Positions 27,187 to 63,378 of a stretch of DNA of 64,000 bases are shown one piece after another. The notes beneath the pieces were generated by a model. That model saw nothing but the letters and a program-made list of their open reading frames with translations, searched no databases and was not told where the DNA came from. How positions within the stretch are numbered: position 1 is the first letter of the stretch; each line of letters starts with the position of its first letter. The stretch covers positions 17,405,875 to 17,469,874 of the forward strand of contig OZ037768.1 of NCBI GenBank assembly GCA_964035545.1. The letters are read 5' to 3'. Made by a program: the position numbers and the translations under genes. This DNA is from Bugula neritina (lineage: Eukaryota; Animalia; Bryozoa).

Positions 27187-30100
27187 ATGTCTCTTTTTAC
27201 TCTTCTCAAACTCTGTGTTTTACTGAATTTGGTGTCTCAGAGTGACACGCTGAGAGTTGGATCATGGAGTTTCAGCTCGTTTGGAACACCTACGCCAGCA
27301 AATCATGAAGCAATAACTACAATGATACAGGTGAGTGGATATGAAAGAGTCAAATGACAATAATCATGAGCTTGTACGTGTGTGTCACAGGGTACATTAG
27401 AGTCAATTACATGAAAATTTGTCAAAAACAATTACTTTTATAATTACAGTGACAAAGTAATATTATTGATTGAAATTACAATTACATTTTTATACATCAA
27501 TTACAAATTACATTCAATTACTTGGAAAAATGTAATTAATTACAACTAATTACAATTACCCCACCCCTGGTGTGTGTGTGTGTGTGTGTGTGTGTGTGTG
27601 TGTGTGTGTGTGTGTGTGTGTGTGTGTGTGTGTGTGTGTTTGTGTGTGTGTGTGTGTTTGTGTGTTTGTGTGTGTGTGTGTGTATGTGTGTGTATGTGTG
27701 TGTTTGTGTGTGTGTGTGTGTGTTGTGTGTGTGTGTGTGTGTGTGTGTGTGTGTGTGTGTGTGTGTGTGTGTGTGTGTGTGTGTGTGTGTGTGTGTGTGT
27801 GTGTGTGTGTGTGTGTGTGTGTGTGTGTGTGTGTGTGTGTGTGTGTGTGTGTGTGTGTGTGTGTGTGTGTGTGTGTGTGTTGTGTATGTATTGTGGGTGG
27901 GCTTATGCCAACCCTAAGTTTGTTGATTAATAATTTATAACGTAAACTTGAAAAGATATGCACTCTTAGTTATAAAATATTATGTAAATAAGCTACTGTG
28001 CTGCTTAAGCTAAGTAAATTAAATATTATTTTAGGTAATAAGACGATATGATGTGATTTTTCTGCAAGGAATTTCAGGATTGGAGAACATTCTTAACAAC
28101 AGGTTTAAATGTAGTCTAATATATTATATAAAAAAAACATAATTATGTAAACATTCAGTAATTTCATGATGTGACCAAAAAGTAAAAAGATGAAAAAAAC
28201 GGGAAGTTTTAATCAACATTTATGTATGCTTAACTGCCATTAGGAAATTCTTAAATACCTTGCATTATTCAATTATCAGAGTAGTCACCTGCTTTAATTT
28301 TTAAATTTTAAATGAAAGAAGTTTGTAAAAGCTATGTATATCATGTGCATGTATAATGTTGTGCTATTTCGGAGTTGTGTACAAAACTGCATTAGGCTAC
28401 TTTTAGCCTAGGGCCACACGGTGCGTATTTTCGCATGCCAAAATTGAAATCACAAGTAGCAAAGGTATCCACTGTAGTGTCAGTGATGCGTGATAAATAA
28501 AGCTTTCATTTTTAAACCGCACTCGCTTTCAATAAAACGCAATTTACTGGAATGTAGCACTAAAATAAAGAAATTGGGCTCGCTGAATAACTACCAGCCA
28601 ATTAGGTGACGACGACAGAGACGATTCGCACTTGCGTTGAAAATGCTGAGCGACAAGTGCGAATGTTTTCTCAACGCGCACAGTGGACACCTTTGCTACT
28701 TGTGATTTCAATTTTCGCATGTGAAAATACGCACCGTGTGGCTCTAGGCTTATTTGTTATGTTGTGCATATGTAGAGCTGCAACAATAATGATAAATAAA
28801 AAAATAATGCCATAGTTTTAAATGAACCAATAGATAAAATAAATCTGTTTCTCCCGTAAGTTTTTGCTTTCAGAGTTATAGTTCTCACTTTTGGGTTTAA
28901 GTAGGAAAATGCTTTTAATTTGATCCTTCTGCATAAGCTTTGTACTTTACCGATGATGCATATAATGTAAGCATTCTTTGACGATGACGGTATGCATTTG
29001 ATGAAGTATTATTAATAAATATACTGGTACTATTGTACTCTCTAGATTCCGAACTATTTGTTGGAATTTATAGCAATCAAAACTGGAACTTTACTGCAGA
29101 TGTGAGACAGAGTGGAAAATCTTACAAGACCCAGTATGTTTGCTACTACAGGTATGTGGTGTGTTTATAATAGAATGGACATGTTAGTACCGCCTGCTCT
29201 AGTCTAACAGTACTGTTGACTCTTGTATTACAAAAATGCTTTGAATAACATATTACAATGTATACTACATATCATATAATATACAATGTAATATATAATT
29301 ATAGGATACATATGCAACATATATCTTATCGTAATACACACACACACACACACACACACACACACACACACACACACACACACACACACACACACACACA
29401 CACACACACACACACACACACACACACACACACACACACACACACACACACACACACACACACACACACACACACACACACACACACACACACACACACA
29501 CACACACACACACACACACACACACACACACACACACACACACACACACACACACACACACACACACACACACACACACACACACACACACACACACACA
29601 CACACACACACACACACACACACACACACACACACACACACACACACACACACACACACACACACACACACACACACACACACACACACACACACACACA
29701 CACACACACACATATCTTTACGAGCTAGCAATTTGATTATAAATAAGTATACGAGAAACATTGTTGATTTATCACTTTATTAGGCAAAGTAATTATACTG
29801 ATATTTCGGGTACCACTGTACCCATCTTCAGAGTAGCAATGAATGAAATTCAAAAATTATTACGTTACGTTAGACGTTATGCATGACACAAAGAATAGAG
29901 AGTGGCAGTTAGTGTAAATTATTGAAACTTAGGGAGATAATCTTATTTTATATATTACGCAGGTCAAAAATTATACTGATTTTTTTTGCATAAAAAATAA
30001 ATTAGAGTTGACAAAAAAATAGATATCCAAACATAAAAACAGCAAGAATTAGTGAAACTATGCGTGAGAGTTGAGTAGTGTGGAGCTATTGATATAGTTT

Positions 30101-33100
30101 TAGTGGTATGGAGTAATTTTGTTTATTGCGTTGCGGTTTTATTTATATATTGCGGTTTTATTTATTTATATATATATATATATATATATATATATATATA
30201 TATATATATATATATATATATATAAATATATCTTTACGAGCTAGCAATTTGATTATAAAATATAAGTATACGAGAAACATTGTTAATTTATTACTTTATT
30301 AGGCAAAGTAATTATACTGATATTTCGGGTACCACTGTACCTATCTTCAGAGTAGCAATGAATGAAATTCAAAAATTATTACGTTACGTTAGACACTATA
30401 CATGACACAAAGAATAGAGAGTGGCAGTTATTGTAAATTATTGAAACAGAGGGAGATAATCTTATTTTATATATTACGCAAGTAAAAAATTATACTGATT
30501 TTTTGAATAAAAATAAATTAGAATTGACAAAAAATAGATATCCAAATATAAAAACAGCAAGAATTAGTAAAACTATGTGAGAGTCGAGTAGTGTGGAGCT
30601 TATTGGTATAGTTTTAGTGGTATGGAGTAGTTTTGTTTATTAAGTTGCGGTTTTATTTGAGCTTCGGCTACTTTTCGATAGTGGGTTCCTTTAAATGAAT
30701 GGTTTAGAACTGTTACATTGTCTATTGATATGTTTTCGTGATTAGTGGTGGAGATGTGTTGATAAATTTTGGAATTGATGTCATGGCAGTGTTTATGTAT
30801 CCTGTGTGATAGGCGACGTCCGGTTTCGCCCGGTTTCGCCTACATATGTTTGTTGACAGGTAGCTTCAGGGCAGGTTATTTTGTAGACTAGGTTGTGTAT
30901 GTGTTCTTTATTGGTTTTATCTTTGAGATTAAAATGTGAACTTGAGGGGGTTCCTTTAAATAAAATCCGGGCATTGAGTTCAATAAACAAAGTTACTCCA
31001 TACCACTAAAACTATTTTTGAATTTCATTTATTGCTACTCTGAAGATGGGTACAGTGGTACCCGAAATATCAGTATAATTACTTTGCCTAATTAAGTAAT
31101 AAATCAACAATGTTTCTCGTATACCTATTTATATATATATATATATATATATATATATATATATATATATATATATATATATATATATATATATATATAT
31201 ATATATATATATATATATATTTATATGTATATATATATATATATATATATATATACTCAATTCAGTTGTTAAAGTCTAGAGAAAATAGCAGGTACCCTAA
31301 AAATTGACACTATAGTTATTGTAGTGTCAACTTATCTATAAATGAGGCTCAAAGTTAGTATGAGTCCCATAAAAAAACAGTCCCATTTTTTTCAAATTGT
31401 CTTCCTATTTTAAGCTGCAATTCCTATCACTTGCGAGGGCAAAATAAACTAAAAAAGAGATGATAGGATAATTGTCACATATAAAACATGAATGTAGTCA
31501 CTTGTGCGTTGTACCTGTCAAGCATACACTAGGCCATTGTTGAAACATTATTTACATAGGAAATTACTTATTATATTGATACTCATTTGCTGAAGATTGT
31601 TTGTACGCAAGTTTGCATGTCTCCAGATATAAAGTGCACAGACAAATTATTTATATTGGCCTGAAACAATTACATAAGTCAGCTAAAGAAACTACTCATG
31701 ATTGCTAGACTATTGAGGTAAATAATGACTAGGGCTATATAATCACTCGGTGGTTTTGGCTTTTGACATTTTATTGAGCTTAATCACTGGCTTAATTAAT
31801 AATTTATGTTGAACCGTTTACCATTTTATTACTAGCTTTATTTACGTTACTGAATGCAATAAAAGGTCCTAATGTGGCATGGTCAAGTTTAGGGGAATTT
31901 ATGAAACTTTCTGAAAATATTTCGTGCTCCTATGAACCGAAAACCTTTACCTCTGAATATACATTTTAATATTATAATGTACACATTGAACTGTTATAGG
32001 TATAAATTATAGTGTTATACATATAAAGTACAATGTCATGCTGTCATTTTACAATTCAAATGAGATTGACTATTTATTGTAAAGTAAGTTTACCATCTAC
32101 TAGAACATCTGGTGACCCCCAGCTCTGATATTGAATTGTTTTTGAAGAATGGAGAATCTGACTCTTCTAGACAGCTACCAGTATGATGATGTAAACAATA
32201 CCTTCGAGTGGGCACCTTTGGGAGCTTTGTTTCACTCTTCTGAGACTGGAGGTATATGATAATAATTGTACATTATTGGGATAAGTTGAAATGTATTTTA
32301 TTTGCATGCATTGTGAACAATTTCAATTAAAGTTGTAAAGGTTTACATTTTTTCTTTGCTTGAAAAGATATAGATTATGCCTTGCAGCTAGAATAAACTG
32401 TTGCGCTAATAAATTCCTCTTTGCTATATGCATAGAATAATGCAAATCTCATACTGACAGTTTAAGGTATGTAGTTTGATGTTATATGTCACTATTATAT
32501 TTATAACCAGGGCTTTGTTCTATAATAGTTGCATATATACAATCTGAAATAGTAGATATTTTTTTATGAAATTGTTCATTTCAAATATAGTCTATCACAT
32601 TTAAGCCCTGGGATTCTCATAAACAATATAGGTTACTGTAATTGTTTTACTATGAAGAAGATCTCTGTAGGTATTGTAAAAATAAAAAGTGCAAATAATA
32701 ATCTTTTTTTAGATCTGCAAAGAGTTGGACTTGTTGGTGTTAAGCTGTACGGAACGGATGCCACCAGTGAAATAGAGGCTTTTGCTGGTGTAGTTGAAAA
32801 TGTTAAAAAGTTATGGAGCATTCAGGTCTGTAAATTCTCCTCTCCTGTCTCTACTCTGTCCTGTTCAGGTAGCGGGATATTCAGGTCTGCAATTGTTCTG
32901 TACTATTAGCAGCACTGCTTTTTGTTTTCTCAAGTTATAGGTATGATCTTACCTTATTAGAGAACATGATTCAATGCTATAATAGATTTATCATGTTTGA
33001 AAATCTTTGGCTAAACTTGAAATAAATAAAACTGGTCTGCACATGTTTTATACAATTTAAGCTCAGCCAAATATTTGTAAACAGGATAAGTCTTTTAGCT

Positions 33101-62979: not shown

Positions 62980-63228
62980 CCTGTGAAATTTTTTAATTAT
63001 CTATATTTGATACCAATGTACGAGAGGGTTACCTCTGCCTTCCCTCCTTTAACAAATGTCTAGCTTTAAAAAATGCTATACATGCTACAGTAAATCAAGA
63101 TATAGGCATGAAATATTCAACAATTATTAAAGGGATAGGAGTTGGCTATGCCAAAATTTTCAGCTTTACGTACTGATGCTGGTATAGAATATTGCATTCA
63201 ACAGCATACGCCAGTTGATGTACTGAGC

Positions 63229-63378
63229 ATGAGCATGTCTCTTTTTACTCTTCTCAAACTCTGTGTTTTACTGAATCTGGTGTCTCAGAGTGACACACTG
63301 AGAGTTGGATCATGGAGTTTCAGCTCGTTTGGAAAAACCAAGTTGTCAAATGATGAAGCAATGACAACAATATTGCAG
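63229..63378 (+). CDS. DNase I-like paralog D, exon 1 only (gene runs off the window)
   Basis: [50 protein letters not shown]|gtgagt; near-identical to exon 1 of A-C. Confidence 0.85.

Follow-up and report, generated by a model that had tools for sequence, protein, structure and literature searches.

Five tandem DNase I-like paralogs, here called pseudo-DNases A to E, encode proteins that resemble DNase I in sequence and in their EEP fold but have lost the residues with which DNase I cuts DNA. They lie on the plus strand, A to C inside the window (the whole 64,000-nucleotide stretch of DNA that was analyzed) and D and E extending beyond its end. Because the cutting residues have been lost, while sugar sites and a likely anchor tail have been gained, these are probably cell-surface binding proteins and not enzymes.

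Based on exon models built from the sequence, each pseudo-DNase has nine exons and a stop-free frame of 307 to 349 aa. Pseudo-DNase A (307 aa) occupies positions 27187 to 35073, with exons at 27187-27330, 28035-28102, 29074-29151, 32148-32251, 32713-32825, 33314-33468, 33873-33969, 34768-34888, and 35030-35073; it is the most divergent copy and has an in-frame 8-residue deletion in exon 2. Pseudo-DNase B (323 aa, or 325 aa if an upstream ATG is used) occupies positions 36816 to 49799, with exons at 36816-36959, 38882-38973, 39779-39856, 41265-41368, 47992-48104, 48399-48553, 48760-48856, 49398-49542, and 49756-49799. A repeat insertion of ~5 kb, GC-richer, lies in its intron 4. Pseudo-DNase C (322 aa) occupies positions 51614 to 57321, with exons at 51614-51757, 53078-53169, 54808-54885, 55215-55318, 55747-55859, 56190-56344, 56723-56819, 56927-57071, and 57281-57321. 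The part of D within the window (63235 to 64000) comprises exon 1 (63235-63378) and the beginning of intron 1; with positions counted on past the window's end, this gene ends at 70784 (349 aa, with the longest stalk of the copies), and the intact copy E (313 aa) runs from 72613 to 85674. Between C and D, on the minus strand (58480 to 62979), there is a bystander, a young Ty3/Gypsy-type LTR retrotransposon with a 1318-aa open reading frame containing reverse transcriptase, RNase H, and integrase, 99% identical LTRs, and a 5-bp target duplication, CCTGT.

The array is flanked by N1 and N2, the sole active-type DNase I genes found in the genome, both modeled on the minus strand. N1 (18696 to 24739; 301 aa) has 8 exons (24739-24590, 22836-22745, 22147-22070, 20803-20688, 20354-20242, 20018-19864, 19635-19539, and 18800-18696), all of the catalytic residues, and a short, basic C terminus; N2 (93031-88494 in continued numbering; 319 aa) closes the array. 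A genome search, whose counts are lower bounds, found no additional DNase I-like copies elsewhere. The initial annotation had described at least four plus-strand paralogs, the three complete ones with open frames of 307 to 325 aa, N1-like intron phases, and exon differences of 12 and 24 nt; our exon models agree with this and bring the number of intact paralogs to five. All introns of A, B, and C are GT-AG and have the phases of those of N1, internal stops are absent, and exon sizes are 144/92 (68 in A)/78/104/113/155/97/121-145/41-44, versus 150/92/78/116/113/155/97/105 in N1, so that most are shared with the active-type genes N1 and N2. The acceptor of exon 4 is an unusual AAG, the sole in-frame acceptor there. 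An Rfam scan gave nothing at the gathering score, and Pfam was uninformative on single exons.

The residue map was made by alignment, with the lists of catalytic, ion-site, and 24 interface residues taken from PMC2987838 and PMC8002113. All five copies lack E39, E78, R111, H134, N170, Y211, and D251-H252, and N7 is counted among the lost residues (S/N at that position). In A, B, and C, respectively, E39 is replaced by G, Q, and G and E78 by T, P, and P (T, P, or I over the family); H134 is replaced by K in these three copies, with a K134R change in E, N170 by K, and D251-H252 by S-R or P-R. D168, D212, the C173-C209 pair, and the domain core are retained in all five. The substitutions and retentions listed in the initial annotation are thus confirmed, with H134 placed by alignment to N1 and N2, since the exon-5 profile had only chance matches in the PDB. 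Of the catalytic pair H134/H252 and its partners E78 and D212, D212 alone remains; of the Mg site IV residues (N7, E39, D168, D212, and H252) together with N170 and D251, D168 and D212 alone are intact. For Ca sites I and II and the disulfide, D201, F109, C173, and C209 are kept, T203 is kept in 4 of 5 copies, and D99 is probably kept (gap placement there is ambiguous), while D107 is changed to N, E112 is changed to A in two copies, and D172 is deleted. That proteins with these predicted sequences would be non-nucleolytic is well supported.

Pseudo-DNases A to E form one clade (100/100) with a long stem (0.91 substitutions per site), and N1+N2 are its sister group (97/96); identity to N1 is 38 to 42%, and synonymous divergence from N1 and N2 is saturated. 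Database searches were run exon by exon, and the joined spliced models were used in local analyses only. The exon-6 profile matches 1ATN and 1DNK (E 2e-10), and the N-terminal half of the B. neritina protein, as modeled in the Atlas, matches DNase1 models at a TM of 0.90. B. neritina has orthologs with the same residue signature. The hypothetical protein EB796_009199 (KAF6032492.1) is the ortholog of copy E, with exon 1 to 4 junctions as in E, G39, I78, W111, P251-R252, and, at the DNA level, an identical type of tail. In the NCBI B. neritina assembly, the E-like copy lacks exons 5 to 7, which are present in JGI contigs L006/L007; this, together with an omega of ~0.7 for E versus its orthologs, suggests that single copies may be dispensable. 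An exon-6 HMM searched against 1.84 billion representatives found one clade member (P0002). Word searches for distant orthologs gave B. neritina-linked sequences or nothing (in one search, candidates of 137 to 436 aa), and a metagenome scan gave an active-type DNase only. Only the Bugula lineage has thus far yielded members of the family, with other bryozoan genomes barely represented in the collections searched.

The predicted proteins have the features of exported glycoproteins. By hydropathy, a signal peptide h-region (10-residue mean of 2.4) precedes the first strand of the mature domain, and there are 7 to 10 N-glycan sequons per pseudo-DNase versus 1 to 2. Some of these are on the rim (at ~139 in C and E and at 206 to 208 in B and D), where they might keep out bulky ligands such as double-stranded DNA. 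The terminal exon 9 (35030-35073 in A, 49756-49799 in B, and 57281-57321 in C) encodes the hydrophobic half of a GPI-like signal: an omega-like S-G motif, within a GPI-like pattern of small residue, polar spacer, and terminal hydrophobic stretch with no cytosolic tail, lies 23 to 24 residues from the C terminus in A to E and in the B. neritina copy, the best 11-residue Kyte-Doolittle mean is 2.3 to 3.1, and the tail ends near basic residues. The Ser/Thr/Pro-rich stalk and hydrophobic tail exon of the initial annotation are both present; however, the S/T/P content after the domain is a modest 19 to 31% even with the tail counted in, and the tail is short. No convincing candidate for an exon 9 counterpart or hidden GPI exon was found in N1 or N2. 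From the signal peptide, omega-like motif, and short hydrophobic tail, it is plausible that the pseudo-DNases are GPI-tailed surface proteins.

Omega over the pseudo-DNases is 0.53 to 0.56 (likelihood ratio test against omega=1, p ~1e-5), and site models place about half of the sites at omega ~0.05. Across 6321 aligned columns of intron flanks, 199 gaps are not multiples of three, a rate at which ~29 would be expected per pair over the coding length, or ~6 at one fifth of that rate; no frame-breaking indels were seen in the coding sequence of A to E pairs. The intact frames are not due to chance. These genes therefore combine an enzyme fold under purifying selection with loss of the catalytic motifs, as in a pseudoenzyme, and the earlier view that they are maintained and not decaying is well supported by omega below 1, five intact frames, the long stem, and B. 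neritina orthologs with the signature.

The account that we favor, with moderate confidence as a whole, is that, in the Bugula lineage, duplication of a DNase I gene beside the active genes produced a copy in which the metal-dependent chemistry of the nuclease was lost while a stalk, a GPI-type tail exon, and numerous N-glycan sites were acquired. This copy would later have multiplied into the five tandem genes, which exchange pieces. The products would be secreted, GPI-anchored glycoproteins whose old active-site groove may serve as a metal-free anion-binding site, in which the basic residues K/R134, K170, and R252 would replace the catalytic histidines and N170, next to the retained pair D168/D212 and to the aromatic residues W111, Y136, and Y175, with the acids E39, E78, D107, D172, and D251 gone. 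The 24-residue interface has a predicted net charge of +2 to +5, versus 0 and -1 in N1 and N2. The likeliest ligands would be extracellular polyanions (DNA, sulfated or acidic glycans, or microbial surface polymers), held uncut, and the variable rim loops may tune ligand preference between copies. The proteins may be receptors or decoys, as the initial annotation proposed.

The old DNA face might instead have no ligand role. The pseudo-DNases would then be maintained surface or secreted glycoproteins, with the basic residues salt-bridging D168/D212 to stabilize an empty pocket, the rim drifting, and the protein acting as a protective, adhesive, or structural component of a coat, which we consider rather unlikely. 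Heavy predicted glycosylation, rim sequons included, is consistent with such a coat, as are the site models, which have ~50% neutral sites and no positive class (M2a versus M1a and M8 versus M8a, not significant). Omega at the 24 former DNA-contact residues is 1.3 to 1.4, versus 0.5 elsewhere, and does not differ significantly from 1 (p 0.12 to 0.17), so faster change of this face and relaxed constraint are not statistically separable. In favor of the binding account, interface columns vary more than the others among A to E (2.29 versus 1.54 states per column, p=0.001), although in active DNases the interface is the more conserved part (0.70 versus 0.52); all five copies keep 28 of 43 family-conserved positions outside the interface and 3 of 12 inside. 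An a priori set of 8 catalytic positions has an omega of 0.61 to 0.68, a constraint no greater than that of the rest. In contrast, rim omega is 1.65 versus 0.5 (nominal p ~0.02, in a partly post hoc test that gene conversion can inflate), and the pocket-floor residues W111, Y136, D168, K170, Y175, A211, D212, and R252 are invariant in 5 of 5 copies while ~40% of other columns vary; both argue against an idle face. It also speaks for the binding account that the codons of K134, Y136, K170, Y175, A211, and R252 have synonymous changes with the residue kept, except for K134R in E.

It is quite improbable that the pseudo-DNases are partners or shields of N1 and N2, through DNA capture and hand-over, as decoys that draw off DNase inhibitors of microbes or predators, or as actin scavengers. 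Physical linkage and common origin with N1 and N2 would fit a partnership, and the rapid evolution of the former substrate face would be in keeping with an arms race around a decoy, but tandem duplication alone accounts for the linkage. We reject actin scavenging: residue 114, where an aromatic or aliphatic residue lowers actin affinity ~10,000-fold (PMC8002113), is F or L, and the N64 sequon sits in the actin-binding strand.

Still less probable is a new enzyme, in which a pocket of two Asp, three basic residues, and an aromatic platform would catalyze a different reaction that needs no metal, with glycans or phospho-esters as conceivable substrates. Two carboxylates with aromatics are a common hydrolase layout, and D168 and D212 are kept alongside the invariant K170, R252, W111, and Y136. 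However, retention of D168/D212 is also expected structurally, no precedent was found, and both histidines and the Mg sites needed for EEP-fold chemistry are lost (PMC2987838). Finally, the absence of GT-AG joints from the only public run that contains the stretch, examined over positions 52000 to 56840 (exons 2 to 7 of C, a part clear of long repeats), one broken B. neritina copy, and transposons within and between the genes might suggest decaying or unexpressed duplicates, but that run also covers introns and so behaves as genomic DNA, and five intact frames with omega below 1, indels only in multiples of three, and, on the stem, a dN of ~0.5 versus a dS of ~2 make decay highly improbable.

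Members of the DNase I family have been regarded as catalytic without exception; in PMC9208542, catalytic activity is reported to be similar among vertebrate groups, and the word "inactive" is absent. A maintained clade of five pseudo-DNases represents the fold recycled as a probable binding module. With the adjoining active sister genes as controls, it provides a naturally occurring case in which to study how DNA might be bound when it is not cut and no metals take part. The reach of this is that of the Bugula lineage, with ligand and expression as predictions. The pseudo-DNases are candidates for bryozoan surface recognition, for which no such molecules were found in the literature searched. 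We suggest only tentatively, as a doubtful proposition, that this may be the first case in which the DNase I fold has given rise to a multigene family of GPI-anchored receptors for recognition, with a metal-free anion pocket made from basic residues and a rim diversified by selection and exon-level gene conversion. In a colonial animal, such receptors would sense DNA outside cells, polymers of microbes, or non-self colonies.

Pseudoenzymes, their lineage-specific expansions, and a GPI-anchored DNase are already known kinds, and catalytically deviant DNase I domains occur elsewhere in the databases; a literature search covering few subscription papers found no description of a pseudo-DNase family such as this one. 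As described in PMC8097288, PMC8934651, and the review PMC10211241, fungal Ssd1/RNase II pseudonucleases likewise kept a nuclease fold after catalytic loss, and Ssd1 was repurposed as a binding protein; these differ in being intracellular RNA binders of unrelated fold that form no tandem surface family. Several catalytic residues are also changed in a fish DNase1-like protein (Channa argus KAF3696364.1; E39N/E78Q/N170H) and in the second domain of Seison nebaliae KAI3388607.1. However, the Channa protein keeps both histidines and falls outside the bryozoan clade by BLAST score, and the deviant database proteins have other substitutions, none with the K134/K170/R252 signature. Compared with DNASE1 (EEP fold, PF03372), the pseudo-DNases share the fold, signal peptide, C173-C209, D168, D212, D198, and D201; they lack H134, H252, E39, E78, N7, N170, R111, Y211, D251, and D172, and they have a positive rather than neutral interface, 7 to 10 sequons, and a stalk and tail exon. 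The vertebrate protein DNASE1L1 (DNase X) similarly joins a DNase I domain to a C-terminal GPI-type signal, but PMC9208542 describes it as an ectoenzyme and traces the origin of its anchor to bony vertebrates, and its ion-site residues are retained (PMC2987838). The bryozoan genes, with the active site lost, are excluded from the DNASE1L1/DNase X orthogroup and group with their local active neighbors N1 and N2 (97/96), which indicates that their GPI-type tail arose independently of that of DNASE1L1.

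The window is AT-rich animal DNA from a 24.8-Mb contig (total genome size, 216 Mb). Its self-comparison reveals repeated exon blocks at 27187-35073 (paralog A), 36816-49799 (B), and 51614-57321 (C) and from 63235 onward (D). At least four paralogs had been recognized in the initial annotation; there are five, with D (349 aa) and E (313 aa) extending past the window end, where N2, a second active-type DNase I gene, is also found. The gene order is N1(-) A B C D E(+) N2(-), N1 being the first active-type gene. The three complete paralogs, described earlier as open frames of 307 to 325 aa, are 307 (A), 323 (B), and 322 (C) aa long, and every predicted intron is GT-AG. 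The earlier claims that intron phases match the active neighbor, that lengths differ in multiples of 3, and that an extra exon encodes the tail also hold: A to E share the exon sizes and phases of N1 and N2 apart from triplet differences, and have in addition a ninth exon that codes for the tail. When exons 4 and 6 and a full-length natural DNase I were searched against the whole genome, no genes beyond these seven were found (database queries were single exons or natural proteins, and the joined spliced models were compared locally). The public sequencing run covering the locus behaves as genomic DNA. The NCBI gene model for a B. neritina copy, which is a prediction and not a transcript, has identical exon 1 to 4 junctions, including an AAG acceptor.

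The ~100 nt of intron before this exon 4 acceptor (32038-32147, 41155-41264, and 55105-55214; also in D, E, and JGI contig L007) are 81 to 95% conserved, equal to exon 4 itself. The AAG acceptor is weak, and a stronger-looking YAG lies 44 nt upstream but is out of frame. RNA folding of the tract is not clearly above that of shuffles (z of -1.7 and -0.4). It may have arisen by conversion or may be a splicing element.

Residue numbering was anchored through bovine DNase I motifs and the residues listed in PMC2987838 and PMC8002113. N1 and N2 retain all catalytic residues. In A to E, N7 is S/N, E39 is G/Q, E78 is T/P/I, D107 is N, R111 is W, H134 is K/R, N170 is K, Y211 is A, D251 is S/P, H252 is R, and D172 is deleted, while D168, D198, D201, D212, and C173-C209 are retained. 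This agrees with the replacements and retained positions first reported for A to C, and the B. neritina copies have the same signature. Because single changes at E39, D168, or D212 already result in very low DNase I activity (PMC2987838), canonical nuclease activity of A to E is very unlikely.

Pairwise domain dN/dS among A to E is 0.34 to 0.66 at a dS of 0.19 to 0.35. A codon model gives an omega of 0.53 to 0.56, which is below 1 (p ~1e-5), with about half of the sites near 0.05, so that dN/dS, suggested earlier as a check, is not near 1 throughout. In intron flanks, 199 non-triplet gaps in 6321 columns predict ~29 frameshifts per pair, and none is observed; this gap rate is inflated by alignment noise, although one fifth of it still predicts ~6. 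These values bear out the proposal that the paralogs are maintained and are not decaying pseudogenes, and we conclude with high confidence that the array of maintained pseudo-DNase I genes is real and well supported. Strong constraint on each copy is another matter: omega for E versus its orthologs is ~0.7, and the NCBI E-like copy (L009:13660) has lost exons 5 to 7, and both speak against it. Relative to JGI contig L006, the loss is a 2-kb deletion into a repeat insertion, which reflects either genuine allelic variation or misassembly; the annotation there, EB796_009199, is a truncated gene model.

A to E form one clade (100/100), whose sister group is N1+N2 (97/96) and whose stem measures 0.91 substitutions per site. 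This long stem, together with a dN of ~0.5 and a dS of ~2 versus N1/N2, indicates that the non-catalytic state is much older than the present copies. Clade members from elsewhere were found only in JGI contigs and the NCBI B. neritina assembly; orthologous introns are ~85 to 87% identical, and a repeat adjoining the JGI copy has ~89% identity with its closest counterparts in the window's genome, suggesting that the window comes from a Bugula-like cheilostome bryozoan near, yet distinct from, the B. neritina already sequenced. Identity differs from exon to exon (C-D exon 1, 97%; A-D exon 7, 98%; C-E exon 7, 95%), and in the B. neritina E-like gene, exon 1 is A-like in its second half; together these point to gene conversion. 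Birth-and-death turnover fits the array best. N1 and N2 are separated by 70 kb, and most of their exons are only ~60% alike. Their exon 4 tracts (185 bp; window 20683-20867 and continued numbering 90462-90646) are 96% identical and their exon 6 tracts (84 bp; 19859-19942 and 89486-89569) 92% identical, which by these identities is recent gene conversion.

Other elements accompany the genes. An intact, young Ty3/Gypsy-type LTR retrotransposon occupies 58480-62979 (LTRs 99% identical, 5-bp target duplication), and GC-richer, degenerate retroelement-like insertions lie at 7900-11500 and, within intron 4 of B, at 42700-47800. A hammerhead-like element of ~75 bp between TA tracts was recognized by eye at 40298-40372 (+), 24062-24150 (-), ~830-911 (+), and 40629-40700 (-); it has the core motifs CUGAUGA, a 4-bp stem, and GAAA, occurs in sense orientation within intron 3 of B and intron 1 of N1, and has no hammerhead match in Rfam. 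A decayed duplicate of the N1 last exon and flank (12053-12745 versus 18320-19002), 6 kb downstream of N1, belongs to a segmental duplication of greater age, in which 2626-7031 is similar to 14016-18308. At 53422-54012, the genomic run yields two contigs of equal depth, one of them identical; the other differs by 50 mismatches and 18 gaps over 597 bases and may represent a second, highly divergent haplotype of C intron 2.

A to E begin with a signal-peptide-like stretch and carry 7 to 10 N-glycan sequons, versus 2 (N1) and 1 (N2) in the domain. Their C-terminal extensions of 41 to 77 residues contain a small-residue motif 23 to 24 residues before the C terminus and a polar spacer, and their hydrophobic stretch is not long enough to form a membrane helix with a cytosolic tail; spacing in B. 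neritina is equal. Such a motif, spacer, and short hydrophobic stretch are the layout of a GPI signal, and the tail is by layout a putative one. Since A to E are predicted to lack a cytosolic part, a signaling role would require a co-receptor. Actin binding is unlikely, given F/L114 and an N64 sequon (criteria from PMC8002113). The best mechanism, which we favor by a modest degree, is that A to E would be GPI-anchored, polyanion-binding surface proteins.

PMC2987838 defines 24 DNA-interface residues, which show above-average conservation in 20 active DNases (0.70 versus 0.52). Among A to E this interface is more variable than average (2.29 versus 1.54 states; p=0.001), and all five keep 3 of 12 family-conserved interface positions versus 28 of 43 elsewhere. 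Interface omega is 1.3 to 1.4 versus 0.47 to 0.50 for the remainder, and 1.65 for the rim without catalytic positions (nominal p ~0.02). Because random-site tests did not detect positive selection, relaxed constraint may account for this fast change. Within this variable rim, the pocket floor (W111, K/R134, Y136, D168, K170, Y175, A211, D212, and R252) hardly varies: apart from K134R, all of its changes are synonymous. This set was picked post hoc, and the a priori catalytic set overall shows no greater constraint than other sites. The interface has a net charge of +2 to +5 (0/-1 in N1/N2) and the domain one of -6 to -13 (-19/-23 in N1/N2). The positive DNA face of DNase I depends on bound cations (PMC2987838); fixed basic side chains in A to E may take over their role, making the old DNA face positive.

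By homology, A to E are DNase I family members; by their residues they do not qualify as DNase I enzymes, and under the sequence definition they are pseudoenzymes. DNASE1L1 resembles them in layout only (PMC9208542). Activity loss is not unique in the family, since databases contain further deviant DNase I domains, but none of these carries the A to E signature. Our literature search found no paper on A-to-E-type or other deviant DNase I domains. One fish group has N170H (P0041, P0052, P0083, and P0061), with E39 and E78 also altered in P0041, P0052, and P0083, and a Seison domain (P0006) is altered at 5 of 10 key residues; these fish and Seison proteins are possibly further undescribed pseudo-DNases.
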